A stretch of 64,000 bases of DNA. It comes from Paragordius varius (lineage: Eukaryota; Animalia; Nematomorpha). Below, piece by piece: positions 12,770 to 53,800 of this stretch. The DNA lies in NCBI GenBank assembly GCA_964247055.1, contig OZ176050.1, positions 13,392,001 to 13,456,000 of the forward strand, given 5' to 3'. A model generated the notes under the pieces. It saw only the letters and a list, made by a program, of their open reading frames with translations, searched no databases and was not told where the DNA came from. Position 1 is the stretch's first letter. Every line of letters starts with the position of its first letter. The translations under genes and the position numbers were made by a program.

Positions 12770-13310
12770 AGTAATATTAGTCATTAACATTGTTTTCATC
12801 GTAAGTCGGGATTCATAGGCCTAAATTGATTTTAACAATAATTCAAATGTTAGTTAGACCGTTTTTAATATTTTTAAATAATTAATGTATAAGTTAAAAA
12901 GTTGATTAAATTATGTTGTTTATTATCATTCAATGCCTTTTAAGAGTTTTAGCCACATAGCTAATTATAATATTAGTTATCAAGATAATTATTATACCAA
13001 ATTTAATGATTTCATTCTATGACGCATTGTTCTAAACAGCTAAAATATCTACTATAAAATCTTAGGCCCGAATTCTAGCTCTTTATTTTACTGGATTGGA
13101 TGGGTATTTTTAAAATTCAGATTTTACTTCAAACCTTTTTAGCTAAATATATTAAATAAGAAGATTTTTTACATCTCATTACGTTTTCTTTTGAAATATT
13201 ACATAATGAAATTTCTACTACCGCCTTAAACCTGTTAAAACGCTAACATTAATGGTTTTATTAATATCTAATTATCAATTGTACTCAGATATAAAACCGA
13301 AAAAGAAATA
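12770..13310. repeat. Segment A: non-coding region just upstream of the Kelch start codon, duplicated in inverted orientation at ~44630-45190
   Basis: For example gaattctagctcttta...ggattggatgggtatttttaaaattcagat matches the reverse complement of 44848-44890; roughly 80% identity by eye over ~540 bp. Confidence 0.85.
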
Positions 13311-13603
13311 AAGTAACTTATAAAAGACATTCCCCAAATACATTTAAAACAAACAGTGATTTCAAAATCAATATTAGCGAGATTTCATCGCTACTTGTGA
13401 ACAAAAGCACTTTTTATTTTTTAACTTTAATATCTTCTTTTGATTTTTTCAGCGCAACTGATTGCAATATCACGGGCATATTCAACGTATGAATTCCGGT
13501 ATTTGATAGAAAATTGTTCAGAAAGTTATTGGATGGTAACCCCAGGTACCTAGGATCTAAAACGGTAGATGGACGGCCTACCATATTTTAATCAAAGACT
13601 GCA

Positions 13604-14734
13604 CCAGGCGTAGTCGTAAGTTATTACCGGTTTAACTAAGAGCAAACGTCAAGAAAAAGTACGCAGACGATTAATTTGATACACACCCCACTTTGTTCAT
13701 CCGACATTAAACGATAAACACACAAAAGTTGAATTCACCAAAAATTCGCGTTATTTTTTTATTTTACCATGTATTCGTGCCTGAATAATAACATTTGCGG
13801 ATCGCATTGCCATCAGAAGAAAAACGCTGTTGAAAGTATGGTGAAGATGCTCTACGATCACCACATGTGAAGTTTCTAAATATTAATTGTGATTTTATAA
13901 GGAAGAGTGTAGGCGCTTTGGCAGATTATACAACTACGAAGTCGCTAAAGTGAAATTATTAAATGATGACCCAATTCAAACTTAAAAAGAATTGGCAGAA
14001 GCTACGTGTATCACAAATCAATAGATGTCTTCGAGCAATGGAAAAGACCAAAAAACTCGGTAAATGGATTTGATTGAACGTCCAATTGAAATTCGCAAAG
14101 TCACTTGTGAAATCTTACTTCACACGAAAATAAATTCTTTTTGCATCGAATTGAGACGGGTGATAAGAAATTATACTGTATGCAAAGCGGAAGAACGATC
14201 GTGGCTTTCTACTTGTTTCGATCCATCAACACCAATGCAGAATCGCTTCCTATTTGGTGTCTGGTAAGATCAGAGCGAATTATAATGAATTTGAAAGTCT
14301 TAACACTATCGCCAATAATAAATTAATTTAAACTATGATTCAATAAAAAACATCCCAAATTGGCCATGTGATAAGGCAAAGTGATTGTAACAATGCTCCG
14401 TCTAACACAGCAAAACTAATGAAAGGCATCTTCGTTTCGATAATTCTTTCGCATCCACTGAACTCTCCTGTCCTGACGACATTAACAAGCTTTAATGGGG
14501 GACATATCCTCGCAGAGCAGCTATCAATAATTTCGAAGACTTTATAAAATGGCTTGCGAAATGGTTATTTGCAACACACAATCAGTTTTTCTGCCACAGC
14601 ATTTATATATTACCTGAGAGATGGGCGAAAAGAAACCAATGACAATTTTTTTAATAAAATATATAATTGATTTTCCCTCAAAAATAAATTTTTATTTTAC
14701 CAAAAAATAGGCAAAAATTTATGACTAGTCCAGG
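13604..14734 (+). mobile_element. Decayed Mos1-like mariner element
   Basis: Left TIR CCAGGCGTAGTCGTAAGTTATTACCGGTTTAACTAAG and a matching right TIR near 14710-14734. Transposase remnants include E-I-L-L, F-L-H-R-I-E-T-G-D-K-K (Mos1 FLHRIVTGDEK) and L-P-E-R-W. Confidence 0.88.
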
Positions 14735-14853
14735 TATATAAACTAGCCCACGCTTTTAAATATATCATTAAGTTCGGGATCTTTATTAAAAATATCCAGA
14801 CTTATACTTTTGTATGTTGGCGCCTTATATCTTCAATTATTACTATGTTTTAG

Positions 14854-16073
14854 CCGCAATCGCCAAATTTACATTGTTGTGATTATTGTCGAAAACCTTT
14901 ACCGCGTTGTGCAATATGTTTGCAACGAATGGTTTTTACTAAACCGCTTAATAAAGAAGCTTTAAAAAATTAAAAACCAATTAATTACTCCAATATACCA
15001 ATAACATCTCATCATAGTACCAATGTTAAAGAAGCAAATTTAACTATCGCTGATAAACCCATTGGTATTGATATAAATTTTGTTTTGAATATTCTTGTGC
15101 TATTTTTGAATAAAAATATATATATAATACCTTTATGAATATAACAAAATAAAAACCTTCTGATTAACTGTTAAATAATGATTATCATAAATACCAAAGA
15201 AATTTGAGAATTTAAGAAGAAAAATTTAGTTTTTTAACAAATTTTATGATCTCATAGATATGCTTTAACAAACATAAATAAGTAATAGCAACAAACAAAC
15301 ATAAATAAGTAATAGCAACAAACATTATCATAGTCACCATGGAGGTCACATAAATCATATGGAGGAATGGTTTAAGTAAGTTTTATAAATTCCAAAAATT
15401 TACGTAAAACTGATATATGACTCCCTTTTCAATAACCCTTTAAAATGATACCCAAAAAATCTTAAATTAATTTCAAATAAACTTCTAGTTAACTTTTATT
15501 AAATAATTAAATTACATATTTGTGGAGTATAGATTTTATGAAAAATAGATTTTTGTGAATGTTTTTGTGCGATTCAATAAACAACCAATTTTTTAGCATT
15601 TTCATTATATTAATATCAGAAATATTATTAAAATGAGTTAGATTAAATATCATCTAAAAATGTGATAATCTGAATTTAGATAATCTGCACTTTAAAAATA
15701 TTCAAAAGTAGAATATACTGTGAAAAAATTCTACGAAATTTAAGCCTAAATGTCAAGTCAAGATGATATGCCTTTTTCGCTGATTTTTTTTTCTTTATTA
15801 TAAATATTTTAGCGTAGATTCAGGCAAAAAGGTATTTGCATTATTATGCCGACCAATGATATTTGGAATATTCTAAAAAAATTACTTAAAATTTTTTTGG
15901 CGCAGTGTTTTATAAAGAAGTGTAGCTGTATTTCCATTTTAGTATACCTTCAATAAATTATATATATATAAATCATTCGCTTTTATTTTTATTTCATTTT
16001 TTTGGTTATTTGTAGGGATCACGTTGAATGTCCTGTCTCGGGCTGCCTTTGTGCCTGTTATTATAATTTTTAA
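14854..16073 (+). pseudogene. MIOS: Orphan duplicate of the last three MIOS exons
   Basis: 14854-14973 reads PQSPNLHCCDYCRKPLPRCAICLQRM...KN-stop, with a premature TAA where the intact gene has GAA. ~15333-15375 reads HHGGHINHMEEWF with the exon's 5' half replaced. 16016-16073 reads DHVECPVSGCLCACYYNF-stop. All three are inverted copies of exons at ~49.7, 49.2 and 47.9 kb. Confidence 0.88.
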
Positions 16074-16723
16074 TCAATTTTAGATAGATAATAAATATTT
16101 ATTCAATGTGAATTATATGACGATGTGACATTCATTATACATATTTATTTTCACAAAAACAAAAAAATACATAAATATGACAAAGTTGTATATAAGATGT
16201 ATATATATTAAAATGTGTACCTACCTAACTAAAAATATATTGCATAAAGTGAGTGTATTTTGATGTTAAAGTTATTTGTGCAAAACTAGAGTAATATTAT
16301 ATTTATATTATAAATTTAATTATGCTTGCTTCTATATGGTTTGTGTAGTATTAATCAAAAATGTGGAATTGTGAAATTCAAATGAGATCCTTTACCATTA
16401 TTTATATATATGTGTATGAGGAAAAAATAAATACCAATATGTATAAGGAAATATCGTAAATTTTTTCAAGAAAAATGCTTAAAATTTTGTGACTCTTTTT
16501 TTGACCTGTGCTATAAAATACTAATTACAGTAAATAATCATAATTTTTTAAAGGAGTTGAACCTATATGAGCAAATATATTGTTTCTTCTTTTAGAAAAA
16601 GCCAAAAAAATTGATTTTGCTCACATACAATATTTAAATTTATGATATGACCATATAAAAACCACAATTGATTTTACCATGTTTTATTTTTTTCCCTAAA
16701 CTCGTAAGGTTTTTAAAAGTTAG

Positions 16724-19700
16724 TTAAGAATCGCCATTTTTGGATGCAGATGCGCGTGAAATCAAGGGCGATTTTCTACCCGACAATGACATTTGGGAGA
16801 GGAGTTCTTGCATGGTTCGTCCACTTTTTTGTTTAGTTTGAAGGGAGACAGAGCCAAATTTCTTGGCAAAGCCGTTTTCTTCCCCATTCAAAGACGTCGT
16901 TTTATTTATATTATTGGCGTTAGATTTTGTCCTATTTTCAAGATTATGTGCACCTTTAGCATTTAATGCATCTTTTTGTTGACCGTTTTTATTAATACTA
17001 AGTAATTTTAGGGGTTTTGTTTTATCGTTCATGTTTTTAGTGGGTGTATATGAAGGAATATTGATGTTAGGTACAGTAGAAGGAACTATATTTGGTTGAG
17101 AATTATCTTGGAAAAAGTTGAAGCATTCCAAACTTTCCACCTTTTCTATGAGCGAAAACTTTTGTTGAATGGCCGTTTTAAGCATGCTATTCAGGATTTT
17201 GTGTTCGGATTCCAGGTATTTGCACTTCTTATCCAATTCTAGCGTACGCATTTGTGCCTCTCTACATTCCTGAAAAAATTAATAATTTATTTGAAATTTT
17301 CCGTAAAAACCCCTTTTTCTTTATTAGATATTGTTTACGCTAAAACTTTTTGCTGTAATTTGAATTATGAAAATTCGTTTATTCCTAATTTTATAAAATT
17401 TAAATAAACAACATTTTTTACACCAAATGCGTATTTTTATAAGGCAACATTTTTAAAATTCACCTTTGTTTCACATGAAATGATATTATTGACTTAATTT
17501 TTAAGTAATGTTGAATAAAATTAAAATAATAAAACAATTTTAGAGTAGGATAGGTATACAATATTTCGATTCATAATAACTTACTTTCCTGCTGGCTGAT
17601 AATTGGGTAGATAATGCAACACAATCATCTTTGTACATGGAAAGCTCTTTCCTGTATTTAGCCAAAGTTTCGGAAACAACCTTCATAATTTATATAATTA
17701 TTATATAAATCTCCTAGAAGTTATATTTTACGTAATTAACTCCTTGATTGCAGTAAAAAATGAAATTATACAAAACAATACGTAAAAAGATAAAACATAT
17801 TAAAAGACCGCTGTAATTATTTATGATTTTTATTAAAAAATATATAAAGTTTAATTGTGAAATTAGTAAATTAGAGATGTAAATTGGTAAAAAAATTAAT
17901 GATATGTTTTACAGTTGTAATTAAATAATTTATATAAAAAAGGTTCAAAAAAAATTGGTCGTAAATTTGTGTCTGGATATTATCAATTATTACTATATAT
18001 TAAATATATATATATATTTCTGATTTTTAACAATTATTACTATATATATATATATTTTTACTTTTATAAAATTTATATTTTATATAATAACCTTTCTCTC
18101 CTCAGTATATTTGACTTGCATTTTGGCAAAACAGGTTTCGGCAGTCGTTTTATAGTTTTGTAGCACTTGGCGATAATTGGCATTTTTGCATCGTTTATTC
18201 ACTATGTCAGCTTTAAGCTTTTGAATTTCCCTATGTTTATATATGTCATAGTATTAGATTAATCAGTATAAAATAAACTAGGGGTGTCCAACGCAAATGG
18301 TTTCGCGGGCCGCATTTTTGAATCTCAAGAATCTGACGGTTAACATTCAAAACATATATGAAAATTAATTAAAAAAAATTAGATTTCAAACACTTTAAAA
18401 TTAATAAACAGAATCATTTATTTGAACAATTTTGCTAATTTGTTGCCAAAATTTGTTTTGAATGTAGTAAATAGCATTTTTTTAATATAAATTATATTTA
18501 CCGGTTGTTTCGTGTTTTTGTCAAAAAATTTTCAAATGTTTTTTACGTGTAAAATCGTTTTATTTCGATTCAACTTGCATCAATGTATAAATAGCCATAC
18601 TATTTTCAATAAAAACAAAAAGGCACATAATTTAATAATCCACCAAATATTAATTTCTCTAAAAACTTCAAACAATATCCATATAAAAAGCAGGGTTAAC
18701 CTTTTAAAAATTGAAAAACAGATAAGACTTAAAAAAGATTGTTCTAATTGTAATCGTCCCAAAATATAAAATATAATTTTACCTTAATAATAGTGCTTCT
18801 CTATCCGTTAAACTGTTTGTTCTTTCACCATTAATTTTGCTATTTCTAATTTTTGATTCCCCGTTTGTTTGGTTATCATTAATGTTTTCGGAAACCTAAA
18901 AATTAAAGTTTATAATAAAATTATAATAAATTATAGCATTTTTTATGCAAAAAAAGGTATATATCATATTAAAGATGCTTTTCGAATATTTAAAATGGTC
19001 GTTTTTAAAATTTGAAAAACCTTTTGGAATTTAAGTTTATAACTATATCATATATATATATACTAATAATTCATCGTTTGTCATATTAAAATCATCGGCA
19101 ATAGTTTCATTAGCATGTTGTATATTGGTTTGAGAAACACTGGTGGCAACGTATGGTAAAAATTCGTGCTTCAATACTTTGGATAAAGATTTTAGTGTTT
19201 TTTCAAAACTGTCAATCCTTTGTTCCATTTTATTGTTGCCTTTAACGAATTTAGTATCGTTATCTCCTTCAGATTCCACTGTATCAAAAACTAAAAGTAT
19301 ATAATAAGAAAATTCATTTATTAACCAATTTCAAAAAAAGGTTTTTCATTAAAAAAATTTATATACCTAAATATGAATTTATATAACATTTTATCTAATT
19401 AACCTATTAAAATTTACCCTTCAAAACATTTTTATTTGACCTTAGTTTGCAAAATTACCCTTAAACATTTTAAATTAACGCTAATATTAATTTTAGGGTA
19501 AATTTGGGGTATAGATGTTATATATTGACATGAGACAAAAAATATAAGAAAAGAGTGCAGTGAATGCATTATATGACAAAAATTTGCAAATATAAAAATA
19601 AAAAACCATTTTCAAGAGTACCATCCATGTTACAATCCATTTCTTTTTGCATTATGGTAAGCTTTTCTTTCAAATTTGTCGCTAATTTTTCAGGAATTTG

Positions 19701-22700
19701 ATTTTTATTTGTGATAACATCTATACTTTCGCATATACATTTAATTATAGCTGGCATATATCCACCTACCATTTCATCTAAACGCACACATATTTTGTTT
19801 TGAGAGGCATCGCGTTCGTCAAGGGATTTTTTCAATTCTTTCTCTGATTCTTGCTATAGTGGTAAATTTTAAATATTTCCGTTTGTAAAAATAAAATTGA
19901 TTATATAACTGAACAGCGAATATAAGCTAAAATTAAATTATTAAAAAGGATGAAGGCGCGTTAGGCAACATTAGTTTTTTTAGGTATTATTAGTGTTTAT
20001 GTATCCGTGGCTGGAAAAAGGTTAGCGGTTTTTGAAAATTTTAACAGATTCAAAAAAACATCAGTGTACTTAAATTTGGAAAATCAATCATCTCTTAAAA
20101 TTTTTAGATCGGGTTCAAAAAGCAGCATTAATTAGTAGTAGAAAAGCAATAATAAAACTTTTTTCATCAACAAGGTTTTAGCTTCTTTGTATTGATTTTC
20201 CTGAGTAGTGAATGAGCTTTGGAGTTGTGTTAAATCTTTTTGTAGCATGGCATTTTGGTCCGTTAGTTGAGCAATCGAGTTTTGTAAATAGGATAATTCT
20301 GCCTTATTCATTTCGGATAACAAATCATTCGGTGTCCCTGATTGATTTAAGGCAAAATCTTAGGAAATAAAAATTAGAGTAAAAATAAAAATAACCCCTT
20401 ACTAGCTAAATTATTTTTTAGGAACAAAATTTAGATATCAATACAATTCCTTTATTTATTTAAAGATTTAAAATGTTTACATTTATAAATTATAATTTTT
20501 TTAATGATTTGATTTCAATAAAAAATTTATTTATTTGTGCGTCAGGCAAGATTTTTATTTTTAGGGTTAAAAGAAAAATCCAAAAATATTTCAAGGATAA
20601 AAAGAATGTTTTTACTGGTGTCCTTACTGAATGGAACATGACAGGCTATATCCATTGATTCTTTGGTATCTAAAAGGCATTAAATTAGTTACAATGACAA
20701 AAAATTTGATTTTAAAAATGATCCTGCATACTGTTGCAATTATAAATTTTTATACAGAAAACTTTAAAAAATATATTAGAGTTAAAGGCCAAATTTGCAT
20801 GAAATTAATGTGAGCAAACAGTTGCTTTAAATAATAAATATTAAACACCAAATTTTTGTCAATAATAAAATATTTCTGTATTAAAAATATCTTCTTACGG
20901 TCAAACATAAGGCTCCGCAAGAGTTCCGCATTTGTTGATGCATTCAAATATTCTTCGATATCTTTTGCTAATAAACAAACAAGCATAAAAATTATAATAT
21001 AATTACTAAAATCAAAAATTTATATAAAAATTATAATATAATTACCAAAATCAAAAATTTATTGTAAAATTATAATATAATTACCAAAATCAAAAATTTA
21101 TTGAAAAATCTATAATATAATTACTAAAATCAAAAATTCTTAAAAAATTTATATAAACTATACCATGTTGAGCTGTATCAGGTAAACCAGGGTTAGTTTT
21201 CGTTTTTGTATTCCATTTCAAATGTTCAATTTCAGTTTTAGCATTTTTGTGAAGCTCTTTCTCACGCAATAATAGCTCATTTGTTTCATTAAGCTAATTA
21301 ATTATTTAAAATTTGAAATTTTGAATATATATATATATTGTAAAATTATTACTTTTTTTGGAAAATCATAAATATAATCATTATAAATAGTAATAGGTAT
21401 GGACAAATTTTATTGCGCATCGAAAATATTTTTTGGAATAATGACCTTACTTAACACTTTAATACCTTTTCACTTTTTTGTCCTATTTAGCTTTTGGGGT
21501 AGGGTAGTTTTAAATCCCAGAGCTAAATTTTGTCAATAAACTACACAGTTTGGAATGTTTTATTTTAGTTATTTAATTCAATTATAATCAAACATTGTTG
21601 CATTGTTGTGTCACACAAACAAAAGCTTATATTCTTTACGGTTTTGTGACATCTATAGTTTAAAATTGGGACAGCTCCAAAATACGATGGAAACGAACAG
21701 CTGTTATTAAAATATTTAAATATACCATTTGCACTTCAAGAGTGTCCTGGAACACTTCAAGTTGGTCCTTGAACACTTCAAGTTGGTCCTTAAAATTTTT
21801 AAATTTGGTAACCATAATTTTTGCATGTATTTTTTATTTTATTATTTTTTTACCTAATTTTCATTATTTATTATATATTTATCCATTTAAATATAATTTC
21901 ATATTCAAAAACCATTTTGAAAAATTGTAAATAATAACTCAAAAAACTTATATATTTTTTAATTAGGTGATAAAATCTTATAAATATTCAAATAATTTTA
22001 AGAAATTAATAAAGATAAACGGTTTCTCAATGATAGGAAGTTGATATTGATTTAAAATTTATGTCAAATAATAGAAAATGAAAACAATAAAATAGATGAA
22101 TGATTTACGATTTGATTAATAAAAGTTAAAAACAAAACAAAAAAGTCAAAGGATCAACTTGAAGTGTTCAAGGACCGACTTGAAATGTTCAAGGACCAAC
22201 TTGAAGTTCAAGAACCAACTTGAAGTGTTCAAGGACACTCTTGAAGTGCAAATGGTATATATCAAGTTTTTAATGGTAAAATATAGCCTAAAAGAGATTT
22301 TAAGTTGATAATTTACATTTTCTAACCATAATATACATTTATTTTCCTGTTGCTTCAGCGATTAAAAAAATTATAGAAAAAAAGGCGGCAATTATTATGA
22401 GATGAGGATTTTTTTTATTATTTTAAATTTTTTTTAAAAAAAAAATTTTTTATAAAGTGCCTAAAAAAGACTAAAGAAAGCATATTTATAAATTCGAATG
22501 AATAGCTAAAATACTTTGTAAGACATTCAATGAAATCGCCTTGGAATAAAAACTAACCCAAAAGGTAAGTAATGAATTGTTAAATGCACAGAACAAAAAA
22601 GTTTGCTTAAGAAATATATTAGAATGACTTATAAATCCATAAAATAAATTGTATATTAATAATACTAGGGGCCATGGTTTTCGTTCAAAAATAATAACCA

Positions 22701-24825
22701 GTCTTGCCGTTTATGAATGGAATTATATCTAGCATATAGACAACCATTGAATGTAAAATGTTAAAAAAGGTAAAACCTCTAGTAAAATGAAACATATCAA
22801 TACAATAACAAAAATAATTTAATGGAATATTTTGATTTTGGAAACTTTCAAGCTTTTCAGCAATTTTTCATGTTTGTTTTCTAATAATTGTCTTTTAAAC
22901 TATATATATAATTTTATTGGATATTATAAGGAATTTATAAACGCTTTTCTCATTATAAAACTCAAAAGGAAAAAACGAATTAAAATTCCATTAAAACAAA
23001 CGAACCTACCTACCTGACTCTTTAGTATGGAGGCTAAAGTTTCTGACTCTAATGCTTTGTGAGTTTGAATAAATGTTTGATCTCTTAAACTTTCCATTTC
23101 CATTTTCATGGCTTCCAACTCCATTTTATTCGTTTCAAGCATCATAATCTATACAAAGCAGAATATATGAATTATTTTAAACTTTGTGTTATAATAATTA
23201 ATCCCAAGGGGACAAAATTCTTAAATCTTCCCCATAAAGCTAATTAAAAAAAATTAAATGGTTTTTAATTGGATAATAAAAACTGGCATATAAAATCCAA
23301 AATATTGATATTAAATATATATTAACACTCAAAAAATGAAATACTATCCCATTTACACCTAAAATTCACCTATGAAATTCATGCTGGAAAGTTTGAATTC
23401 CCTTTAAAATAAATTATGTGTTTTAGAATATCAATAATTACCTATATTTTTTCATATTTTAATGATAATTCGTTTTTAGAAATAAGATAATACAGAAAAA
23501 ATTACAATATGCCATTCGGAAATTATTTCATATAAATGATTTAGATTAGCCCAAAAACACATAATTTATTTTTAGAGTGAATTTGAAATGTTCAGGGATC
23601 AATGGTAAATTTATATTGTTCAAGGGTGAAATTGAGGTGTAAATGGGTATAAATTGAATCAAAAATTCTAATATATTAAGATCATGTTAATATTAGATGG
23701 TTACCAATTTTTTGGTACAAATTTATAATGAAAATAACCTTTAATTGCCTAATTAAAACACCAAATATTTTGCGCCGTATTCACAAAAAATCAAAACGCA
23801 ATATATATTGAAATACTTGTTTCTGCAAAGATAAATTTTCGTCTTCAATAAGCTCAAGATCCGCTTGAAGTTTTCGTTCACGGGCTTCGCAGTCTTTTAG
23901 TTTGGTTAAAGCATGAATTTTTTCACAACTTTTTTTAGCAAACTCAGAATCATATCGCTCTGTGGTTCGGTTTAACTCCTCGTTTTCTTGCAGGAGTCTA
24001 TAATTTATAAAATTGTTTGGAATTATTTTCTGATTCTAAATTTCTTGGAACTTTATGTATGATTAGATATTAAACATAATTTATTCATAATTGTACATAT
24101 TGTGGTTTATAGTTTAGGAATTTAAAAGTTGAATTAAATTTACCAAAAAAATTGGCTTATTGTTTTTCAGTTAAATGGTTCCAATCATTTTCCATAATAA
24201 ATTTAAATACACCCCTGATTATAAACACAAAAAAAGTAGTTCAAATGCTTTGTCTGATCATTTCAAAATTTTACTTTATTGATAATAAAAACAATAACAG
24301 GTTGAACTTGTTAAAATTTTAACAAAAAAACACAATTTTTTGGAACCATAAACAGTGGTCGTAAAAAGGTATTAAAAATGTTTTCAGATAACAAAAAAAT
24401 AATAATTTCTTTTGTTTGTAAAAAACTGAATCCGATCATTTCTGTAAAAAAAATTAAATGTCTACCTATCTTTTTCTCTCTTCAGAGATTTTAATTGTTT
24501 TTCCAAATCCCTAATGTATTTAGTCAATTCTTTTTCAGTGGCAGATGATTCAGTTTCATCAGAAACATCTTCGGTAACCTCATTGTTAAATTGACGCAAA
24601 GCCTATGTATAACTAGATATTTTAATATACCTTTTGAGCAAACTCCAAATCAGATTGGGTTTGTTCCTGTAAAATTTGAGTTTCCCTCAAGCGTTTTTCT
24701 AGTTGCTCCTTCTCCTCTATTATACTGAGACCTAACTGAGCTGCTTTAACATTTTCACGGTTTGCGTTCTCAAGTTCTTGCTCTAAACGCTGTATTTCAT
24801 TGCGAAGAAATTCCGTTTCGTCCAT
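16724..24825 (-). CDS. BICD: Bicaudal-D dynein cargo adaptor (coiled-coil), about 13 exons
   Basis: Exon 1 reads MDETEFLRNEIQRLEQELENANRENVKAAQLGLSIIEEKEQL (BicD KIQAAEYGLAVLEEK-like). An internal exon reads LKDCEARERKLQADLELIEDENLSLQKQ. The CC3 exon 18092-18230 reads EIQKLKADIVNKRCKNANYRQVLQNYKTTAETCFAKMQVKYTEERK (cf. [32 protein letters not shown]). It is followed by 17585-17680 and a terminal exon 16724-17269. Confidence 0.9.
20986..21140. repeat. 39-bp tandem repeat, about 4 copies, in a BicD intron
   Basis: Repeated unit aaaattataatataattac(t/c)aaaatcaaaaatttatt. Confidence 0.85.
21725..22255. mobile_element. Foldback-type MITE (family F2) with inverted arrays of a 21-bp unit
   Basis: TATA|CCATTTGCACTTCAAGAGTGTCC ... 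GGACACTCTTGAAGTGCAAATGG|TATA. The unit TTGAACACTTCAAGTTGGTCC is repeated in each arm in opposite orientation. Confidence 0.9.
23348..23647. mobile_element. Diverged relative of the CCATTT foldback MITE family
   Basis: Left end cccatttacacctaaaattcacc and right end ggtgaaattgaggtgtaaatggg. The internal aaataaattatgtgtttt motif is shared with family F1. Confidence 0.65.
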
Positions 24826-25328
24826 AATAATATGTGAAAACTTTCAAAATATTGTTTGCAGTTACTCAGTTTTTATCATGTGTGATTGATGAGCGATCGT
24901 CCTATCATATGCAATTTTACAAATTTATGCCTCATTACCTTTATATATTTATGTAAACAATACATTTTAAGATAATACTAGAGCTAAAGTTTGGGATATA
25001 ATATAAAAACTAAAATGCTTTTAAAATTACCAATCATTAAACATATATTTATGCAAGATTTTACAGTTTCGCATATTTTAAATTTATGAGGCGGTTATCC
25101 GTCACAAACGGCTTGCGATCGGCATTAGCACAATATATAGGGATGAAAAATATTTTCAGTATAAAAATATGCATTCGGTTGAATTAAGCTTAAAGAATAT
25201 TAGATCTATTAAACATTAGTATAAATATAGATATAGTCGATTGGATTTATTTTACCTGTAAATGCCAAATATATCTTCAATATATTTCATACATATCTTT
25301 ATATAAACTTATCATTATATCCCTAGAA

Positions 25329-25449
25329 GTCAACTCGACCCCCGACGCAACCAGACGGCTGTCACTGAACCACCATTGACTGGTGTATGGAAGGGCAGCA
25401 AGGGACGTCTTTTGTGGACAGTGGCGACGTGGGTCTGCTACACCCTTTT
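25329..25449 (+). ncRNA. Candidate structured non-coding RNA of unknown family
   Basis: GC-rich island of ~120 nt in very AT-rich DNA, with extensive self-complementarity, an upstream TTTATATAAA (25298-25307) and a terminal TTTT (25446-25449). I could not match it by eye to U snRNAs, 5S, tRNA, Y, vault or RNase P/MRP. Confidence 0.4.
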
Positions 25450-25523
25450 CTTGATACACCTTGATTAGATATTTAAACATAAAACTGTAAAAAATACTGG
25501 AAAGATTTATTCAGATAAGTTGT

Positions 25524-26458: not shown

Positions 26459-26490
<32 letters not shown>

Positions 26491-41079: not shown

Positions 41080-42300
41080 GCTGGCTTTTTTAATTTCCCT
41101 TTTTTTACCCGCTCTCCCCCTATTTTTTAAATCTATTTTTCGCCCAAGGTATGAGACAGTAAAAATTCAATAAGGATTCCACGTATTCCCTGGTAAAAGG
41201 CAAAAATTTTAGTCAAGCGTTTCTTTGTAGCTGCTGGGTAGGAGATACCCGCTAAAAACTGATCCGTCATATCATTGTGCCTTTGGGGCTAAATTTCAGA
41301 AAACTTATCGGGATGTATGAGTTCAACCCGTGCTTAAAATATTACCCGTAAAAAGCCAAAAATATCGAGATTTTTTAAATTAGCGGTTAAAACTCTGGGT
41401 AGGGTAACCGCGTAAAAATGCGTCACTATATCGATACAGCATGCATTTGGAGCCAAATTTCAGAAAACCTATGAGACTATGTGAGTTCAATAAGGGCCTA
41501 AAATATTTATTACCTCTTAAAAAACAAATATTTTAGTATAGGGGGTTATTTCGATAGGTCGCTAAGAAAAGTTTTACGCCCTGAAAAATTCGCCGCCATA
41601 GAACATGTTTTTGGTTTTGAAGCAATATTTCCAATAACATATAGGAACATATGGACATTATGATTCCAGATATTCCCCATATAAAAACAAAAATTTTGCC
41701 CGACGCCTTTTACCTGCCTCTGGGTAAGAAGCTACCCGCCGAAAACTGTGTCACTCTTAGAAATTGCGTTGTTTTGGAACTAATTTAAAACTTATGCCAT
41801 ATGAGCGCATTTAAAGTTCGAAATATTACCCGTAACTAGGAAAATTAAGGTCAGGCCTTTTTTTATTAGCCATATTTGGGGCCTTTATGCCCTAAAGTAC
41901 GTCATCATATAACGATTATTTACTGTTGAGGTATTTTTTCGAATAACCCATGAGACGATGGTCTCAAAGATTATTCCAAATATTTTCCCTATATAGGCAA
42001 AAAATTTACTTAGCGCTTTTTCCATATAGGCCTACGGGTAGGGGTCTACCGGTTTAAAACTGAGAAGCCATACAAAAATGACGTGGCTTTGGAGGTAATT
42101 TTCAAAAAACTCAAGAAACCATACGAGTCCAATAAAGGCTTTAAATATTACCCATAAAAAGGTAAAAATTATAGTATAGCGGTTTTTTGCATAATTTGGG
42201 GCCTCTCACCAGCGAACAATATATTAGTATGATTGAAAATCCTATGAGATCATAGCTATTAAATAATGTTTCGAATTAATCCACATATATGGATAATTTT
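41080..42300. repeat. Old tandem array of ~160-bp monomers (7-8 copies)
   Basis: A GGGTAG...TACCC...AAAACTG-like motif recurs at ~41237, 41397, 41558, 41721, 41876, 42036 and 42196. The motifs aaatattaccc and tttgg..aatttcagaaaac recur at the same period. Confidence 0.75.
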
Positions 42301-42765: not shown

Positions 42766-44400
42766 TAGTGGTGTACTGAGGGGGGGCAAGGGGGTGCATT
42801 ATGCCCCGGGCGCCGTTATTTAGGGGCGCCTAAATGATTTTTTTACTTAAATTTAAATTATGGAAAACTAATTAACTTTCAATTATTTATTTCAACAGTT
42901 GATATAATAATCCTTAAATAATATAAAAATTATATAAGTGAGATCAAGAGCAATCATTATGTAAAAGACAACTTTCATGATATTCCCTTCAACATGTGCA
43001 AATTTATTCCTTCGCTTTTTCTTTATCACGCACATATTGTTAATTCTTTTATTGCCTTTAATATAATTTTTTTAACTTCTCTCTCTGTTCAAACCTTAAC
43101 TCTTTTTTCTTACAATTTATAATTGCATTTTTATTTTAATCATATTCAATTTCAAAACCCAATTTTATTTATTTAAATCCCCAATATCATTCCATATCTA
43201 ACAAGGTAGGTTATTTTTATTATTATTATTACCTTATATTATTTAGTTATTATCATTTTCATCAGATATAATACCTAAACTCAGCGGTTAAGCAAATAGG
43301 AAATGAAAAATCCAGAAGCAGAGTAAAACAAATAAAATGCGAATGTGTATGAAAACTTATTTAACGAAAATATCTGATCGTAACATTAAAAAAAGAACGG
43401 TACCCCTTAATATTAATAACTTAATACACCTGAAACCCTAGTTATTGATTGATATAAATAGAGATAAGATAATTACAAATATAGCATTAGTAATTCCAAG
43501 GGCAATTCCTATAGAGTTTAATGATGCTCCTATTTAAACTTTACTAATAATAATGTTCCCGTAATATCTAAACAACTTCGCACAGAAATGATCATTCGTG
43601 GATATCAAGGATATCAAAATAAATGTAATCTCTTTGAAACAAAAAATCATCGTTCAATGCCCTAATCTTGGTTTTTTCTACGAGTCATTTAATAAGAAGG
43701 ATTTGAAGTTGAGAGGTCTTGGCTTTTATATTCACCAAAAAACAGATCTGTGTGTTTTTGTTGCCTACTTTTTAATCGATCTAATTCTTTACCATCCTCT
43801 TTTATTACTACGCTTGGTTTCAATAAATGGAGGAAAAAAGATAAATTTATCCATCATGAAAATAGCCTCAATCATCGGAAAGCATTTACTACTTGGAAAG
43901 AGGCAGAAGAAGATTGATAAATAAAAATGGAATTGTTTCTGAAGCTCATATACAATCGGAAAAGGATGGTTGTTGGCCTGCTTAAAAATTTTAATCACCC
44001 AAAATCTCCCTTTAGGGCATGTTGAAAGTTTAATGTATCTTGATTCAGCACCAAGTCCTGGAAACTTATTTTTAATTTACTTAACCTTATAGCTCAGTTT
44101 TGACCTAATAATGGGAGACCACATGAGAAACATTGAATCTCCTAACAATTTATCCGATGTTTAATTCAAAATCCAAAACGAGTTTATACATCTTTAGCTT
44201 CAAGAGTTAAAGCTAAATTGATCAATGACATAAAAAAATAAATATTATGGACTTATATTTGATTCAACGCCATATATAGCCCACCGAGAACAAATTTTTC
44301 AAGTTGTCAGGTATCCCACTGGATTTTATCAGACGAAAATGCTGTACGCAAAGACATTTGTGGCGAGATTTCTGGTCCTATAGGTTTGTTTAATATTTTT
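42766..44400 (+). mobile_element. hAT transposon relic (ZMYM1/TTF zinc finger-type transposase), 3' truncated
   Basis: GC-rich left end TAGTGGTGTACTGAGGGGGGGCAAGGGG...GCCCCGGGCGCC. Frameshifted remnants read HENSLNHRKAFTTWKE, QNLPL-GH, SPGN-F, IAQF and YYGLIFDSTPYIAHREQIFQVVRY (hAT first catalytic-Asp region). Confidence 0.8.
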
Positions 44401-44629
44401 ACAATGATTAAACTGTAAAATAAATTCTCCACCTTTTTAGCACACTAATTTTATCTTTTGATTTTTTTGTTGAATTGCCGAAAACATGGCAAATTAAAAA
44501 AAGATAATATGGTTAGAAAATATACAGTGCTTTTGTTCACATGTTGTAAATGAAACTTCTATAATATTAATTTCGAAATCAGCTGTTTGTTTTAAATGCA
44601 TTGGGGGAATGTATTTTAGAAATTACTAA

Positions 44630-45190: not shown

Positions 45191-45886
45191 TGTTAGTATA
45201 ATGATAATTGAACAGAAACTAATTGTTTGACAAACACAAAGAACCGGAACCAAAAACCCGGTTTTATATTAGGGTTTGGTTTTAACCGGTTTAAAAGCAT
45301 TCAAGCTCATAAGCACTCATTCATAAATTTTATATATGTTGATTCAATAAAACCAATTATGTGTTTTAAGCGTTGAAAAAATTTGATAAAATTCTATTTT
45401 ATGACCATTAAATATAAGTAATTTTAACCATTATTTTATATTATATATGTGTAAAAGTTTTTAAATAGTTATTCTTATTAGCTGTTGCTCACTCTATCTA
45501 CTCATTACCAGTCAATTCAATTCTAGCTCCTAAATCTTTATAGATAGTTCTCAAATAGACATATTCCAAAGGTTTCCAACACGCGGCTTACCGAAATATT
45601 TTTGAAGCCCTGGAGAAATTTAAAAAATACCTAATATAAAATCTAATTATTAAAAAATGTTATTTACAACATTTAAAACAAATTTTGGCAATAAATTATC
45701 AAAATTGTTCAAATAAATGGTAGTTATTTTTAAATCCAATAAATTTTTTTCAATTAATGCTCATATATGTCTATGTCCCGTCAGATTCTTGAGATTCAAA
45801 AATGCGGCCTTTTAAGCCATTTGCGTTGGACACCCCTAGTTTTTTGTATACTGATTAATCTAATAAAATGACATATATAAACATAG

Positions 45887-47407
45887 GGAAATTCAAAAGC
45901 TTAAAGCTGCCATAGTGAATAAACGATGCAAAAATGCCAATTATCGCCAAGTGCTACAAAACTATAAAACGACTGCCGAAACATGTTTTGCTAAAATGCA
46001 AGTTAAATATACGGAGGAAAGAAAGGTTGATTATATAAAATATAATTTTTATAAAAGTAAAAATATTTAAACTTATATCAAAATAAATAAATATATATGT
46101 ATATATATATATATATATATAGTAATAATTGATAATATCCAGACACAAATTTACGACCAATTTTTTTTGAACCTTTTTTATATAAATTATTTAATTACAA
46201 CTGTAAAACATATAATTAATTTTTTTACCAATTTATATCATTAGACTTTATTTAAAACATTGAGTTATATTAAAAAAAATCAGTTTAAGTAGTTACAGCA
46301 CTCTTATGAAAAAAATATTTCTTTATCTTTTTACGTATTGTTATGTATAATTTCATTTTTACTGCAATCAAGGAGAATTATGTAAAATATAACTTCTATG
46401 AGATTTATATAATAATTAATATATTATAAAGGTTGTCTCCGAAACTTTGGCTAAATACAGGAAAGAGCTTTCAATGTACAAAGATGATTGTATTGCATTG
46501 TCCACCCAATTATCAGCCAGCAGAAAAGTAAGTCATAATGAATCGAAATATTGATATATCTATCCTACTCTGTAATTTTTTTCTTTATTTCATTTTTATT
46601 CAACATTACTCAAAAATTAAGTCAATAATATCTTTACATTTTGAAACAAAGCTGTAAAATAAGCATTATATTTTAATGTTGCCATGAAAATAATTTGGTT
46701 TAAAAAATGTTGTTTTATAATGAAATGGGGCTTCATTTATATTTTGTAAAATTAGCAATAATCGCATAATTCCAATTAAAGCAAAAAGTTTCACGTAAAC
46801 AATATCCATTAAGTAAAAAGGGGTATAGTGCGAAAAGTTTCATATAAATTATAATTTTCAGGAATTTAGAGAGGCACAAATGCGTACGCTAGAATTGGAT
46901 AAAAAGTGCAAATACCTGGAATCCGAACACAAAATCCTGAATAGAATGCTTAAAACGGCCATTCAACAAAAGTTTTCGCTCATAGAAAAGGTGGAAAGTT
47001 TGGAATGCTTCAACTTTTTCCAAGATAATTCTCAACCAAATATAGTTCCTTACACTGTACCTAATATCAATATTCCTTCACATAAACCCGCTAAAAACAT
47101 GAACGATAAAACAAAACCCCTAAAATTACTTAGTATTAATAAAAACGCTCAACAAAAAGTGGCATTAAATATTAAAGGTGCACATAATCTTGAAAATTCC
47201 ACAAAATCAAACGCCAATGATATAAATAAAACGTCGTCTTTAAATGGGGAAGAAAACGGCTTTGTCAAGAAATTTGGATCCGTTTCCCTTCAAACTAAAC
47301 AAAAAAGTGGACGAACCATGCAAGAACTCCTCTCCCAAATGTCATTAACGGGTAGAAAATCGCCCTTGATTTCACGCGCATCTGCATCCAGAAATGGCGA
47401 TTCATAA
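45887..47407 (+). CDS. BICD: Orphan inverted duplicate of the last three BicD exons; ORF and splice sites intact (possible minigene or young pseudogene)
   Basis: Exons 45887-46025, 46432-46527 and 46862-47407 match 18092-18230, 17585-17680 and 16724-17269 with no indels or stops. The first in-frame ATG at 45996 gives 223 aa. No upstream BicD exons were found on this strand. Confidence 0.7.
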
Positions 47408-47891
47408 CTATAAAAACCTTACGAGTTTACGAATAAAAATAAAACATGGTAAAATCAAGTGTCATTTTATTAATATGGTAATTGTGGTTTTTATATGGTC
47501 ATAAATTTACATATTGTATGTGAGCAAAGTCGATTTTTTTGGCTTTTTCTAAAGTGTACATTGTTTAATTAAAGATAAAACAATATATAGTTGCTCATAT
47601 AGATTAAACAACACCTTTAAAAAATTATATTCTTTATTGTAATTAGTATTTTATAGCACAGGGTAAAAATGAGTCACAAAAGTTCTAATTTTTTTGAAAA
47701 AATTTACGGTATTTCTATATACATATTGGTATTTATTTTTTTCTCATATTCATATATAACTTATATATAACTTTGTCATATTTATATCTTTTTTGTTTTT
47801 GTGAAAATAAATAATGTCACACCATCATAAAATTCTCATTGAATATATATATATATATATATATTTACTATCTATCTGGAATTGTTTTTGA

Positions 47892-50800
47892 TTAAAAATT
47901 ATAATAACAGGCACAAAGGCAACCCGAGACAGGACATTCAACGTGATCTCTAAATAAATAACCAAAAAAACCAATAAAAATAAAAGCAAATGATTTATAT
48001 GTAAATAATGTATTAAGGAAGGAGGTAGATTAAAATAGAAAAACAGCGTAACTTGTTTGTGTGAAAAAACTGCACATAAAAAATTTTAATTACTAAATTC
48101 ATTGGTCGGTATAATATTGCAAAAACATTTTTGCCTGAATCTACGCTAAAATTTCATTATATACCATTTACAGTTCATATTCACCCTTAAACAATTCAAA
48201 TTCACCCTTGAACAATTCAAATTCACCCTTGAACAATTCAAATTCACCTTTGAACAATTCAAATTCACCCTAAAAATAAATTATGTGTTTTCGAACTAAT
48301 ATAACTCATTATTAATATGAAATATAAATTTATGGTGTAGTTAATTATTTTTTCAGTATTAATTTAATTTAAAACAAAATTTTTATTTTTTAAAAAATAT
48401 ATAAAATATAGGTATTTTTTGATCTTAAAAAACATATATTTTATTTGAGGGTGAATTTAAATTGTTCGAGGGTGAATTTGAATTGTTCAAAGGTGAATTT
48501 GAATTGTTCAAGGGTGAATTTGAATTGTTCAAGGGTGAATTTGAATTGTTAATGGTATATAAAAAAAATTGACGATAAAGATATATCTTGACGTTAAAAA
48601 ACATTAAGGAATTATATTTTTAATAGATTGCATTATTGAAATTATAGTGGGATTATCCAAATTCAGATTATAAAATTATAGGATTTTAAACTGGTTATAG
48701 CACGCAAAAAAATTAATTTCATAAACAGAGAAGGTACAGTAAAAATTGAAATATGGACAAAACGTAAAAATATAAAGACAAATATTTTTCTCTAAAAGAC
48801 AACCATACTTTTTAAATCGTAATTTTCTTAAATGTAATGATTGTTTTAAATTCCAAAGAATAATTATAGATGTTAATTGGTAAAACAATTAATATATATT
48901 TTAGGCATGTTAATAAATGTATAAGTAAGATTAAGGTTTAAAAAACTATGGTTGTATTTTAGAAAAAGATATTTGTCTTTATATTTTTACGTTTTGTCCG
49001 TATAATTTTAATTTTTACTGTGCACAAAAAGAGGTTTGATTGTATTCTATTATATAATATGCATTAATATGTGTTTGATTCTACGGATTATTTTGAAAAT
49101 TTTAGGTATATATAAAGGTTATTCGAAATTAATTTAAAATTTTTCTGAGGGTTACTTAAAAGGGATTGCAATATCAAGTTTTAAGTAAATTTTTGAAATT
49201 TATAAAACTTACTCAAACCATTCCTCCAGATGATTTATGTGACCTCCATGGTGACAACTCAGACACCAGCAAAACCATTTGTTCAAATTATCCAAATCTA
49301 TTACATTTTTTTAAAATATTATACATTGACATTCAAGAAAAATGTTAGTAATGTTTGTTAAAGCATATCTATGAAATCATAAAATTTGTTTAAAAAAACG
49401 AAATTTTGCATCTTAAATACTAATTTGGCATATATTAATTATAATTTTGTCATCTTATAATAGTCATTATTTATCAGTTAATCAGAAAATTTTTAATTTG
49501 TTATATACATAAAATTATATATAACCTTTATATAAATACTTTTATTCAGGGAAATTTTAAAACGCAAATATCAATACCAATGAGTTTATCAGCGATAGTT
49601 AAATTTGCTTTGACATTGCTACTATGATGAGATGTTATAGGTATATTAGTGTAATTAGTTGGTTTTTCATTTTTTAAAGCTGCTTTATTAAGCGGTTTAG
49701 TAAAAACCATTCGTTGCAAACATATTGCACAACGCGGTAAAGGCTTTCGACAATAATCACAACAATATAAATTTGGCGATTGCAGCTAATATACAAGGAA
49801 AATTGAAGATAAGGCACTACATATAAAGTTTAAGTCTAGGTATTTTATAAAGATCTCAACCCTAATAATATATTTCTGAAGCATGAATTGAAATGCTAGT
49901 ATTAGGTGTACTCAAAAGTTTTTATTGTTTTTTCGGCAAAATCATGTAAGTTTGAATGATAGCTTATTCTTTTATTTAAAATTTTATATCGATTTCTACA
50001 TATTTCGCCCATCTCTCAAGTAAGATTTATGCCGTGGCAAATTGATTGTCTTTTGCAGACCGTTTGCAACCTATTTCGATTCGACATTATCAATAGGTTG
50101 CTCTGCAAGGATGTGTGCCATTAATACAAAATCGTATTAGTCAAATGGCAACATTAGGTGAGTTCAGTGGATGTGAAAGAATTTTCTATCGAAACGATTT
50201 CAAGATACCTTTAGTTTTACTGTGTTAGACGAAACATTGTTATGTAGCAAAATCACTTGGACATGCCTTCTGGCCAATATCAATCGTTTTTCGATTAAAT
50301 GGCGACGTTTAAAGGTTTTCTCGGGTTTCAAAATTCATTATACAATAACTGATTCGCACCAGGTATAAAGCACGGTCTTCCTGCCGAAGCTATTTAACAT
50401 TGGCGTTGATGGACCAGGGCAAGGTGAAAGCCACGATTTTTCATTGGATTTACATAATAAAGCTATTTCTCATCACCCGTCTTCATTCGATGCAAAAATG
50501 ATTTCTTTTTGAGATTCAAAGAGTGTGGAACCCATTTACCAAGTTTATTTGTCTTCCTCTTGCTCGTGAACATCTATTAATTGTTTTTTGTAATACATGT
50601 AGCTTGTGCCAATTGTTATTAGTTTATATTGGGCATCCAATAACTCTTGCACTTTAGCGACTTCGCAGTGTATTACAGAGCGCCCACACTCTTTCACCTA
50701 AAATTACAAATTTTAATATTTCGAAACTTAACATGTGGTGATAGATAGAGCATGTTCACCATATATTTCTGCCAGCAAGAGATACCTTTCAACAACCTTT

Positions 50801-53800
50801 TTCCTCTGATGATGTCCCAAAAATGTTATTATTTAGCACAAATTTGACTTGATCATTGAATAAAAAATAACGCGAGTTTTTGGTGATTTCAACTTGCTTA
50901 TGTTTTTCGCTTAATGTTTGAACAAAGTGGGGTATGTATCAAATTAATCGTCTGCGTATCGATTGCTAACGCTTTGATTTAGTTAAACGGGTAAAAACTT
51001 CTGAATTCTCCTATTACAGTCTTTGATTAAAAATATGGTAGTTTACTACCTATCATCTAGATAAAAAATTAAAACCTCTTTTATAGCGCCCGGTTTTGTA
51101 TTGATAGTGGGAACAGGTTTTTTGCCACCACCCCGATTCCAGCTTGTGGCGAAAAGGGATTGATTTAGATCCTCATCTTTGGAGTCATTAGAAATTTTTG
51201 AAATTTCTTTTTTATTTTTTGACTCAGCACTATAAACTAAAGGTATGTCAGAGATTTTGTCAGTTTTATCCACATTGTTATCAATAGGGCTGTTTGACTG
51301 CTCAAATATCGGTTTATTAGTGGCGTTAGTAAATATATTTGTAATTTCAAGATCATTTTTTGTTTCAGAAGCTAATCCAAATTTTTGTGGTTGCTCCTCT
51401 TTATCTAACACAAGAAAAAAATAAATATTAGTTATAAAAATTTTGTTAATAAATAATTTATTTTAAGAGGGTATCAAGATTATTCCATTGACGGTTTCTT
51501 TTAAGCCCAGGATTGACCCTTTACTTTAATATTTCATAAAAGTTCCAACTTCTTACAAAATACCGTTATTACATTAAAAGATAAATGCACAAAAAAATTC
51601 ATTGCGCCTTGCATTTTTATCAGTACGATGCTATTTATTCATTACCTATTGCTAAATGGTGTTTTGATAAAGTGTTGTTTTTAAAAATGGTTCCAATTTT
51701 ATTAGTAAAAACGCTAATTTATGGCCTTTTATATACCATCTTTGGTATGATTATCGATTTCTACAGGAAGGGAATCTTGGTTTGTATCGGTAATAATGTT
51801 AATCGTGGTGGCAATTTCTTTTTGTTTTAGATTGCTGGCAGATTTATCATTGGGTGAAATTTTGTCTGAACATTCATCCAAAATCTTTTTTCTTAAGGGA
51901 CGTCCGCAAAACGGACAGGAAACAAAGGGCTACACACAAAATTTGAGTTAAAAACTTAGTTATCTTATTTAAAAAAGTGGAATTAGATAAATGCATAATA
52001 TAATTGTAATGTGGAAAACAATAAATTTAAGATTCTTACTGATGGATATGGTGCTTTAAAATTAAAGGGAAACTGATTATTGATGTAGGAATCCAGCTTG
52101 ATTCTAAAAGTATTTATGTAAAATCAAAATTAAGTTTATAGAGATACATTTATTAACTTTACATGTTTAGTGTTTAATTTAAATACAGTTGCACATTAAT
52201 GTTGATACTCACATTATTTGTCAATTGGCAATACACTAGCGTCAGGATAAAAACAACAATTGTTGAATTAAAATTTTTTCCTATCTTACAACATTAATTT
52301 TATTTAATTATGTACTAATTGTGTTTCATAACGCTACTGTATTACCAATTGGCCAACAATATTGTGAATTGAGCAACATTAAAATGAATACTACCATTTA
52401 TATATTAAATTCACCCTTGAACATTTTAAATTGCTATAAACCATTTTAAATTCACCATTAAACATTTCAGATTCACCTTAAAGGTTTTAACCTCACACCT
52501 GATTTAAAATTAACCCTTAAACATTTCAAATTTATTCTCAAACATTCAAATTTTACCTTTGACCATTTCCATTTCATGCTTTGGAACATTTTTCACTTTC
52601 AAAAATTTTATATTCCCCAAAAAACATTCCAAATTGATCCTAAACGTTTAATAAATTATCAACATTTGAAATTCACCATCGAACATTTTGAATTTACTCT
52701 CTAATTTTGAAAATTCGCACGCTATATTTCAATTTCCTGAGGATTTAAACATCCTAAAATATTTTAAATTAACTGTTAAACATTTAATTACCCTTAAAAA
52801 TATCGAATTGACCCTTAATTTCAAATTTGCACTCAAATATTTTACTCTCAAACATTTGCAATCCACCCTATGCGATACCCTCAACATTCACCCTTGTTAT
52901 ACCCTAAATATTTCAAAATCCTGGAAATTTTTATTTCACCCCTGAAAATCTATATTAACCTCGCGTTTTAAATTCAGCTTAAAAATTAATTTTGTAGGGT
53001 TGGACTAAATTTTAACTGATATTTGATATTGAGTATTTGTTTGGTATTATTTATATTTTTTCTGTTTTAATACTCTATTTTGTTAATTTTCACAAAAATC
53101 AAAAACATAATTCTCATTTTTTATCAAAATGATGTAATAAAACAGAAAAAACAAATATTTAATATCCTGAATAAATTAATTTAGCGCCAAAACACATAAT
53201 TTGTTTTTAGTGGTCATTTGAAGTTTTATAGGGTAAATTTAAGGCGTAAATCGTAAGTTTATTTTTCTTAAACTTATTACAAATCAAAGAGCTGTATTTT
53301 TTAATTATTGGGTATCTTAATATATTATACAAATAGGTCACAATAAAAAGCTATAGGCGCATACCTACAACCGCAAAACATGAAAAAAAATAACACACAC
53401 TCATTTTTGAGCACTGATCAAGGTACTAATAAAATTGGCAAAACGTTATAAACATATTGATAATGAAAAGCAAATTAAAAAAAGCAACAAATAAACCAAT
53501 GATTAATTTCTGGCAGAATTTTAATTCAAAAATTCTCAAACCTTACCTTGTTTCAAATTCCTGACATTGATTGAGCCAACTTCGATAACTATATAAAATA
53601 AATAAAATTAATCTGAGATATTATTAAAAATATGATGGTAATATTGATTCATAATAAGCAGTTTTAAGATTATTTTATAATAAACCAATGTATCAGATGT
53701 ATAAAACGTGGATGTGTGCGTATATTGGAGCCTACTTCGGATATAATATCTTTATTTGGTCCACTTACTTTGTTGTTAAATTTGGATCCAGTATATTGAT

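Follow-up and report, generated by a model that had tools for sequence, protein, structure and literature searches.

The 64,000 bp window analysed here (G000:C1:13392001-13456000; contig OZ176050.1 of the Paragordius varius assembly GCA_964247055.1, 110.6 Mb in 44 contigs) contains a rearranged locus lying between a Kelch-repeat gene on the left and a gene that is probably MIOS on the right. Two segments, A (~0.7 kb) and D (~5 kb), are each present twice in opposite orientation (A and A', D and D'), and the present order, established by self-BLAST of the window, is Kelch-A-D'-interior-A'-D-MIOS. This arrangement is read here as the product of a single old inversion of ~32 kb with staggered breaks that duplicated both A and D, a reading to which we assign a probability of roughly 0.6. 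Segment D includes the 3' ends of two genes, BicD and the putative MIOS gene, and each gene now faces a spare copy of the tail of its former neighbour. Positions are given within the window, and negative coordinates lie upstream of its start.

The inverted pairs were located by a seeded repeat search combined with gapped self-BLAST of the window, which has a G+C content of ~27%. Segment A (12785-13446) aligns in inverted orientation to 45195-44491 with 79% identity over 710 columns (590 bits), and D' (13578-18499) aligns inverted to 51041-45639 as three collinear pieces with 70%, 76% and 85% identity (855, 326 and 2415 bits, respectively). Both matches are far above chance level, and both were found where an earlier note, made by reading the sequence, had placed them, its coordinates being off by no more than ~150 bp. 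The two pairs are interleaved and their order is swapped, with A-D' on the left and A'-D on the right, which rules out a simple inverted copy of one block.

Refinement of the edges gave the following arrangement from left to right. Segment A (12757/12785-13446, forward strand) is the Kelch-adjacent copy of the Kelch upstream region, as defined by a three-way alignment of A, A' and a further copy, A'', described below. The left junction, J1 (13447-13578, forward strand), holds the truncated 3' end of an element resembling a long interspersed nuclear element (LINE) and leads into D' (13579-18499, 4921 bp, reverse strand), the inverted copy of D, which is continuous with the body of BicD. The inverted single-copy interior (18500-44490, 25,991 bp, reverse strand) includes the 5' exons of BicD, PYCR, signal recognition particle (SRP) RNA, GNMT and other sequence, and its final 175 bp (44316-44490), designated x, bordered A on the right in the ancestor. 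Segment A' (44491-45195/45222, reverse strand), the inverted Kelch upstream region, is still attached to x. It is followed by the right junction, J2 (45223-45638, ~420 bp of filler with two short repeat-like pieces), and by D (45639-51041, 5403 bp, forward strand), which is continuous with the MIOS body. Breaks 1 (~12757-12790) and 2 (between 13446 and 13447) form the borders of segment A, and breaks 3 (~45639-45652) and 4 (between 51041 and 51042) those of segment D. Each copy retains its ancestral neighbour on one side only (Kelch-A, x-A', D'-BicD body and D-MIOS body).

The outer edge of the D/D' homology, at 13579 in D' and 51041 in D, lies 8 nt into a MIOS intron and directly follows the AG/GTAGTA donor that closes exon 51049-51462. 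The inner edge, at ~18485-18499 in D' and ~45652-45639 in D, lies within a BicD intron. D' meets the BicD body and D meets the MIOS body through an intact intron in each case, and BicD reads across the D'/interior boundary as MIOS does across the D/exterior boundary. Both A and D were non-repetitive DNA before the event, and D is present in two copies save for an embedded mariner and small repeats. The mariner, a Tc1/mariner-type element with many genomic copies, makes up the outer 1.13 kb of D; the copy in D' (13603-14736, termini CCAGGTGTA...TACACCTGG, TA target site) has its counterpart at 49900-51014 in D, and the element was identified by its termini, TA target site and genomic copy number, not by a transposase domain.

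Segment A occurs three times in the genome (A, A' and A''), with all copies within 52 kb, and is not the common dispersed repeat that the earlier note had named as a possible objection. A'' is located 6.0-6.7 kb upstream of the window and belongs to a Kelch gene copy that goes back to an older tandem duplication. The Kelch gene and A have been duplicated in tandem, with the paralogue K1 (-15037 to -6301) sharing 83-86% identity with 4676-13012, the region of the copy in the window, K2. To the left of A, both A and A'' run on together into the Kelch exon, and A' diverges from them at ~45208-45222. To the right, A diverges exactly after 13446, and A' and A'' continue together for 168-190 nt. This shared flank is x (44490-44316, matching -6164 to -5999 with 87.5% identity). 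Kelch-A''-x, in one piece, preserves the pre-inversion junction, and A and x were once contiguous in the Kelch orientation because A'' runs straight into the sequence that is now beside A'. In the main copy, x sits 31 kb from Kelch-A, upside down and attached to A'. A flank detached from Kelch-A yet joined to A' is what inversion with duplication of A predicts. The tandem Kelch duplication is judged to predate the inversion. Over 350 columns common to the three copies, A and A' have the highest pairwise identity (0.846, the others being 0.803 and 0.811), with 25 and 22 private changes for A and A' and 37 on the A'' branch. The whole tandem unit extends over ~13376960-13386000 of the contig (-15037 to -5999) and corresponds to 4676-13449 in the window. 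Its two copies are separated by a spacer of ~10.7 kb that contains tandem repeats and a non-long terminal repeat (non-LTR) retrotransposon with reverse transcriptase and endonuclease open reading frames (557-3175, reverse strand).

The duplicates of A and D are equally diverged. The proportion of differing sites (p) is 0.154 for ungapped columns of A and A', and 0.140 for the non-exonic, non-mariner columns of D and D' (n=1477), where the Kimura two-parameter (K2P) distance is 0.155. At the synonymous sites of BicD, dS between D and D' is 0.143. A single old event fits because these three measures are the same, and equal ages would be expected if A and D were copied together. Divergence per lineage is ~0.075 substitutions per site, and the event is old and presumably fixed. 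The mariner segment has a K2P of 0.28 between D and D'. Polarised against other family copies, its private changes per site are 0.087 in the D' copy, about half of 0.155-0.17, and 0.132 in the D copy. These changes are mostly C-to-T and G-to-A, and the mariner has a G+C content of 35% versus 19-24% in A and the introns. Faster decay of the GC-richer sequence under AT-biased mutation would be a sufficient explanation for the mariner excess.

J1 is taken up by the 3' end of a dispersed non-LTR (LINE-like) element, overlooked in the earlier note, which reaches to within 1 nt of segment A and 5 nt of D'. The fragment is 5'-truncated with an internal deletion of ~120 nt. Its tail, of the GGATGG type, directly adjoins D', and it has no visible target-site duplication. 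Its identity to the family copies L008-L013, L022 and L023 is 82-89%, and a miniature inverted-repeat transposable element (MITE) was ruled out as the source because the family copies extend upstream into reverse-transcriptase-like sequence and end in the GGATGG tail. We infer that the fragment was captured at end joining, either as a repair patch or via a nick made by the element that supplied break 4, because a later insertion would need to strike the exact joint. The filler at J2 (45223-45638) contains two short pieces that recur in the genome and, apart from these, has no match to the J1 LINE, to nearby DNA or to the rest of the genome, which gives no support for the J1 LINE or locally templated DNA as its origin. 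Within the LINE family, the last 840 bp of L022 (G000:C8:4592400-4599400) and L023 (G000:C1:9014000-9021350) are 98% identical, and the family has seemingly been active recently, much later than the J1 fragment, which is only 82-89% identical to these two copies.

The present order is explained most economically by the ancestor proposed in the earlier note, Kelch-A-[...BicD]-D-MIOS, which is backed by the A'' paralogue, the copy number of A and the equal ages of the duplicates. The ancestral locus would have read Kelch, A, x, the block with GNMT, SRP RNA and PYCR, and then BicD and MIOS tail to tail. Four cuts would have been made, two flanking A (the first ~100 bp upstream from the Kelch start codon, the second another 690 bp beyond it) and two flanking D (in the BicD intron and 8 nt into the MIOS intron). 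The ~32 kb between the outermost cuts would have been rejoined upside down, and the staggered cut pairs would have led to the copying of A and D, which are now found at both ends in opposite orientation. The new junctions would have been sealed by end joining, the left patched with LINE copy DNA and the right with ~420 bp of filler. At present BicD draws on the D' tail and MIOS on the D tail. Only a duplicating outcome left BicD and MIOS whole because both of the D cuts are inside genes. The earlier suggestion that the duplication let both genes survive holds in this respect, as breaks 3 and 4 fall in BicD and MIOS introns and a plain cut at either would truncate the gene. The BicD and MIOS stop codons are ~1.8 kb apart (47407 and 49209), and a plain cut between them would equally have been harmless.

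Several points weigh against this reconstruction. Its polarity is argued from internal evidence only, with A'' standing in partially for an outgroup; word-based searches with the first Kelch exon and with the last exon of the orphan BicD tail returned no proteins, including no self-matches. A 5-kb stagger is also long for the version of the model that uses single-strand nicks. Substitution support for the grouping ((A,A'),A'') is modest (chi-square P ~0.1 for the 25, 22 and 37 private changes), and divergence along D is uneven, at 0.05-0.10 in exon blocks, ~0.15 in introns and 0.28 in the mariner. Filler at both junctions (132 bp of LINE and ~420 bp) hides the original joints, and both J1 and J2 are known from the assembly sequence alone.

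The staggered-break mechanism named in the earlier note accounts for the exact product seen, but at least one other mechanism would give the same product. In a replicative route, again a single event, a stalled or broken fork would have copied A and moved to an opposite-strand template where D ends on its outer side. Copying would then have run backwards through D, the interior and A before a second switch, to the inner end of D, and these two template switches yield a product identical to that seen. Inserts at both junctions are common at replicative joints, and unwinding between two nicks would account less readily for duplications of ~5 kb. Fork stalling or microhomology-mediated break-induced replication is the route put forward for human dupINVdup variants, a class that has been described (PMC5338099). 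However, the J1 insert is a tailed LINE 3' end that resembles captured reverse-transcript DNA and not a local template, the J2 filler matches nothing nearby, and no microhomology is readable after ~15% divergence. Staggered nicks and template switching are indistinguishable at this locus because both junctions carry filler and the event is old. On balance, template switching is considered unlikely, though it is the most credible of the alternatives to staggered breaks.

An origin in several steps is a good deal less probable. An inverted duplicate of D would have landed beside A, recombination between D and D' would have flipped the interior, and a separate inverted duplication would have produced A'. 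In its favour, inverted repeats several kb long are able to flip the intervening DNA more than once, the tandem Kelch duplication marks the region as prone to duplication, and the uneven divergence along D would be accommodated. However, at least three independent events at exactly complementary positions would be required, and the equal ages of A/A' and D/D' are not predicted. Nor would a mere extra copy of A produce the observed state in which A lacks x but A' has it.

A transposon-driven inversion, by ectopic recombination or aberrant transposition between oppositely oriented copies of one element at both breakpoints, is very improbable. The earlier note had placed transposable element relics next to both junctions. 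The mariner does adjoin break 4, its end being 24 nt away, but it lies inside D, and the hAT relic is unsupported and away from the junctions. The LINE fragment that fills J1 and the short repeat-like pieces in J2 would also be compatible with a role for mobile elements. Against this, the D/D' homology extends 24 nt past the outer terminus of the mariner and also past its inner terminus, and the copies in D and D' have 38 derived substitutions in common relative to the family majority. Because both flanks and the 38 derived changes are common to both copies, the comparison identifies a single insertion, made in the MIOS intron before the event and copied along with D. Two independent insertions are ruled out by the same observations, and a transposase cut at the mariner terminus is ruled out as the source of break 4, which lies outside the terminus. 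The LINE occupies J1 and has no counterpart in J2, the two junctions do not hold chimeric copies of a single element with exchanged target-site duplications, and recombination between repeats would leave unique flanks such as A in single copy. The possibility that the assembly is at fault, through merged haplotypes, a collapsed repeat or a mis-oriented contig, is scarcely credible even with the J1 and J2 joints drawn from the assembly, as the copies differ by 14-26% with many indels, far beyond allelic variation and enough to exclude the merging of haplotypes raised in the earlier note, BicD and MIOS each read correctly over the old joints, the orphan tails have had different evolutionary fates, and the locus is inside a 15-Mb contig.

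The two gene tails that were duplicated together with D provide a built-in contrast, in that one has decayed and selection has preserved the other. For all of the genes described here, exons were searched singly and were joined only to set the reading phase. The exons of BicD span 24843 down to 16724 on the reverse strand, with the upstream exons in the interior (19046-24843) and the last three within D'. These are e1 (18092-18230, corresponding to Pfam BicD positions 592-637), e2 (17585-17680) and e3 (16724-17269), the last coding exon, which includes the CC3 cargo-binding coil, the tail and the stop codon. The tail exons match positions 592-637 and 671-717 of the 718 in Pfam BicD as well as solved C-terminal coiled coils of BicD proteins, and a genome-wide scan with the BicD profile gave matches at this locus only.

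The candidate MIOS gene runs on the reverse strand from ~58.7 kb down to 49.2 kb, with its 3' end inside D. Its functional 3' coding exons are a zinc-motif exon (49549-49785) and the last exon (49209-49256), and the exon just beyond D (51049-51462, reverse strand) is the right outer neighbour of the rearranged segments. The zinc-motif exon bears CRKPLPRCAxCL, and its best matches among solved structures are all MIOS, followed by yeast Sea4 (E 0.005-0.01). Searches of Pfam with six exons, of PDB with four and of Atlas with one, and a genome-wide scan with Pfam MIOS_a-sol, gave a match for the C-terminal zinc motif only. The gene ending in D is probably MIOS, as judged from this motif.

The orphan copy of the MIOS tail is in D'. 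Its zinc-motif exon (14854-15075, forward strand) is interrupted by an in-frame TAA (14971-14973) and carries an insertion of 3 nt, and in its last coding exon (15332-15379, forward strand) the first Cys is replaced by Ser and there are two more amino-acid changes. Comparison of the MIOS tails in D and D' gave 4 synonymous (Sd) and 8 nonsynonymous (Nd) differences and a dN/dS of ~0.55, and a ratio of 0.55 is the expectation for one constrained and one free copy. The orphan MIOS tail has decayed into a pseudo-exon.

The orphan BicD tail is in D (45887-47407, forward strand) and consists of e1 (45887-46025), e2 (46432-46527) and e3 (46862-47407), all of which have kept their length, open frame and splice sites. 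Over the whole tail, Sd is 21 and Nd is 20 (dS 0.143, dN 0.033, dN/dS 0.23). The coiled-coil part comprises e1, e2 and codons 1-52 of e3 and gave an Sd of 11 and an Nd of 4 (dN/dS 0.09); these 4 replacements compare with at least 22 expected for a drifting orphan (P ~1e-6; conditional binomial P 0.0015). Likewise, the 1255 non-coding columns contain 29 indel events, whereas the 781 coding columns contain none, against 9 expected if the orphan were free (P 1e-4). These patterns show that purifying selection has acted on the orphan BicD tail since the event. The description of this copy in the earlier note as an orphan needs qualifying, since it is conserved and not decaying. It probably belongs to a transcription unit.

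Recent gene conversion was ruled out for e1, e2 and the tail of e3, where synonymous sites are as diverged as the introns, but is possible in the first 52 codons of e3 (pS 0.035) and in an intronic block of 99 nt. This AT-rich block (46115-46213, corresponding to 18001-17902 in D') is perfectly identical in the two copies, and the surrounding non-coding sequence is ~14% diverged (P ~7e-5). When examined for structured RNA, the block gave neither an Rfam match nor a stable fold. Its identity may reflect a short tract of gene conversion or the conservation of an intronic element.

A' is oriented toward the orphan BicD exons. A search for a start exon between A' and e1 returned a single ATG-started mini-exon candidate at 45401-45417 (5 codons, compatible phase, near-consensus donor GTAATT), which is too weak to call. 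We tentatively propose, as a possibility that falls somewhat short of an even chance, that the inversion created a new gene comprising only the cargo-binding C-terminal coiled coil of BicD and possibly expressed from A'. If so, its product would be a stand-alone cargo-binding module without the dynein-activating part, which could act as a competitor or regulator of full-length BicD.

The locus falls within a class of rearrangement that has been described before. At each breakpoint of inversion 2q of Drosophila mojavensis, unique DNA of the two break regions is present as inverted duplications of ~1 kb and ~4.3 kb (Guillen and Ruiz 2012, PMC3355041), with unidentified transposable element insertions between the duplicated blocks, an ancestral state seen in D. 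virilis and an age of ~1.4 Myr (PMC3355041). The layout here is near-identical, with duplications of ~0.7 kb and ~5 kb, but the event is much older (~15% divergence), is in another phylum, has its polarity argued internally and has one LINE-filled junction. At 2q, the new gene Dmoj\GI22075 arose from a partial gene duplicate that has neither the first exon nor the upstream region (PMC3355041), and the orphan BicD tail resembles it in keeping its frame, splice sites and protected amino-acid sites.

In the D. melanogaster group, staggered-break inversions carry ancestrally single-copy sequence as inverted duplications at co-occurring breakpoints (Ranz et al. 2007, PMC1885836), and 6 of 29 inversions had both regions duplicated at both ends. 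The duplications in that group have a median of 321 bp and a maximum of ~1.9 kb, and most gene pieces caught up in them decay. They also reveal the polarity of the change, which was assigned there with outgroup species (PMC1885836). The structure found here is the product drawn for staggered breaks, fill-in and end joining, but D is ~5 kb. Human dupINVdup variants, in which an inversion is flanked by duplications of both break regions (PMC5338099), have the same topology. They are recent or de novo and are generally ascribed to replicative template switching, whereas the event here is ancient and presumably fixed, with unreadable junctions.

Endonuclease-independent LINE insertion occurs at breaks. 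J1 resembles junctions of this kind in that a 5'-truncated element, with its 3' tail against a broken end and no target-site duplication, bridges distant ends. LINE-associated repair and rearrangement junctions have been described for mammalian L1 in cell lines and tumours (bioRxiv 10.1101/2024.12.14.628481). The fragment here differs in belonging to an unrelated LINE family, whose tail is of the GGATGG type, and in occupying one of the two junctions, where its capture would have accompanied the joining.

To the known class this locus adds a paralogue that records the old junction, a LINE-filled joint and the contrasting fates of two tails. It is a clean, base-resolved inversion with both break regions duplicated, outside the insects and vertebrates in which the class has been described, and an older paralogue in the same genome lets polarity be argued without an outgroup. 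It further shows how two convergent genes can come through a break within them, and how rearrangements of this type provide raw material for new genes. Knowledge of how inversions arise is unchanged.

The gene content listed in the earlier note was largely recovered. BicD, PYCR, Kelch, SRP RNA and GNMT were confirmed and MIOS was weakly supported through its zinc motif, but exon-level searches gave no support for the labels 'COX7A-like' and 'hAT relic'. The first coding exon of K2 (11617-12672, reverse strand), the left outer neighbour of segment A, is a 352-aa open reading frame with its ATG at 12672, and Kelch motifs are present in the downstream exons. Within the interior, PYCR (27068-30237, reverse strand) and GNMT (36492-38492, forward strand) were confirmed at exon level, and a metazoan SRP RNA is located between them (30839-31179, forward strand).

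Three further types of repeat are found in and around the window. Short palindromic MITE-like repeats, in units with 'NSNSPLN'-like frames, are located at 23375-23659, 28166-28581, 37676-37928, 48136-48570, 52387-52551 and 55581-55968. The copy at 48136-48570 is in D with none in D', which indicates insertion after the duplication and explains part of the extra length of D. A dispersed repeat of ~550 bp occurs in direct and inverted copies at 5550-6063, 25523-26101 and 59418-61180, with three or four of them grouped together at 59.4-61.2 kb. A GC-richer repeat (~34% G+C) has four local copies, at -19133 to -18273, -14299 to -13793, 40817-42290 and 66234-67526, which sit around the Kelch paralogues and the interior.

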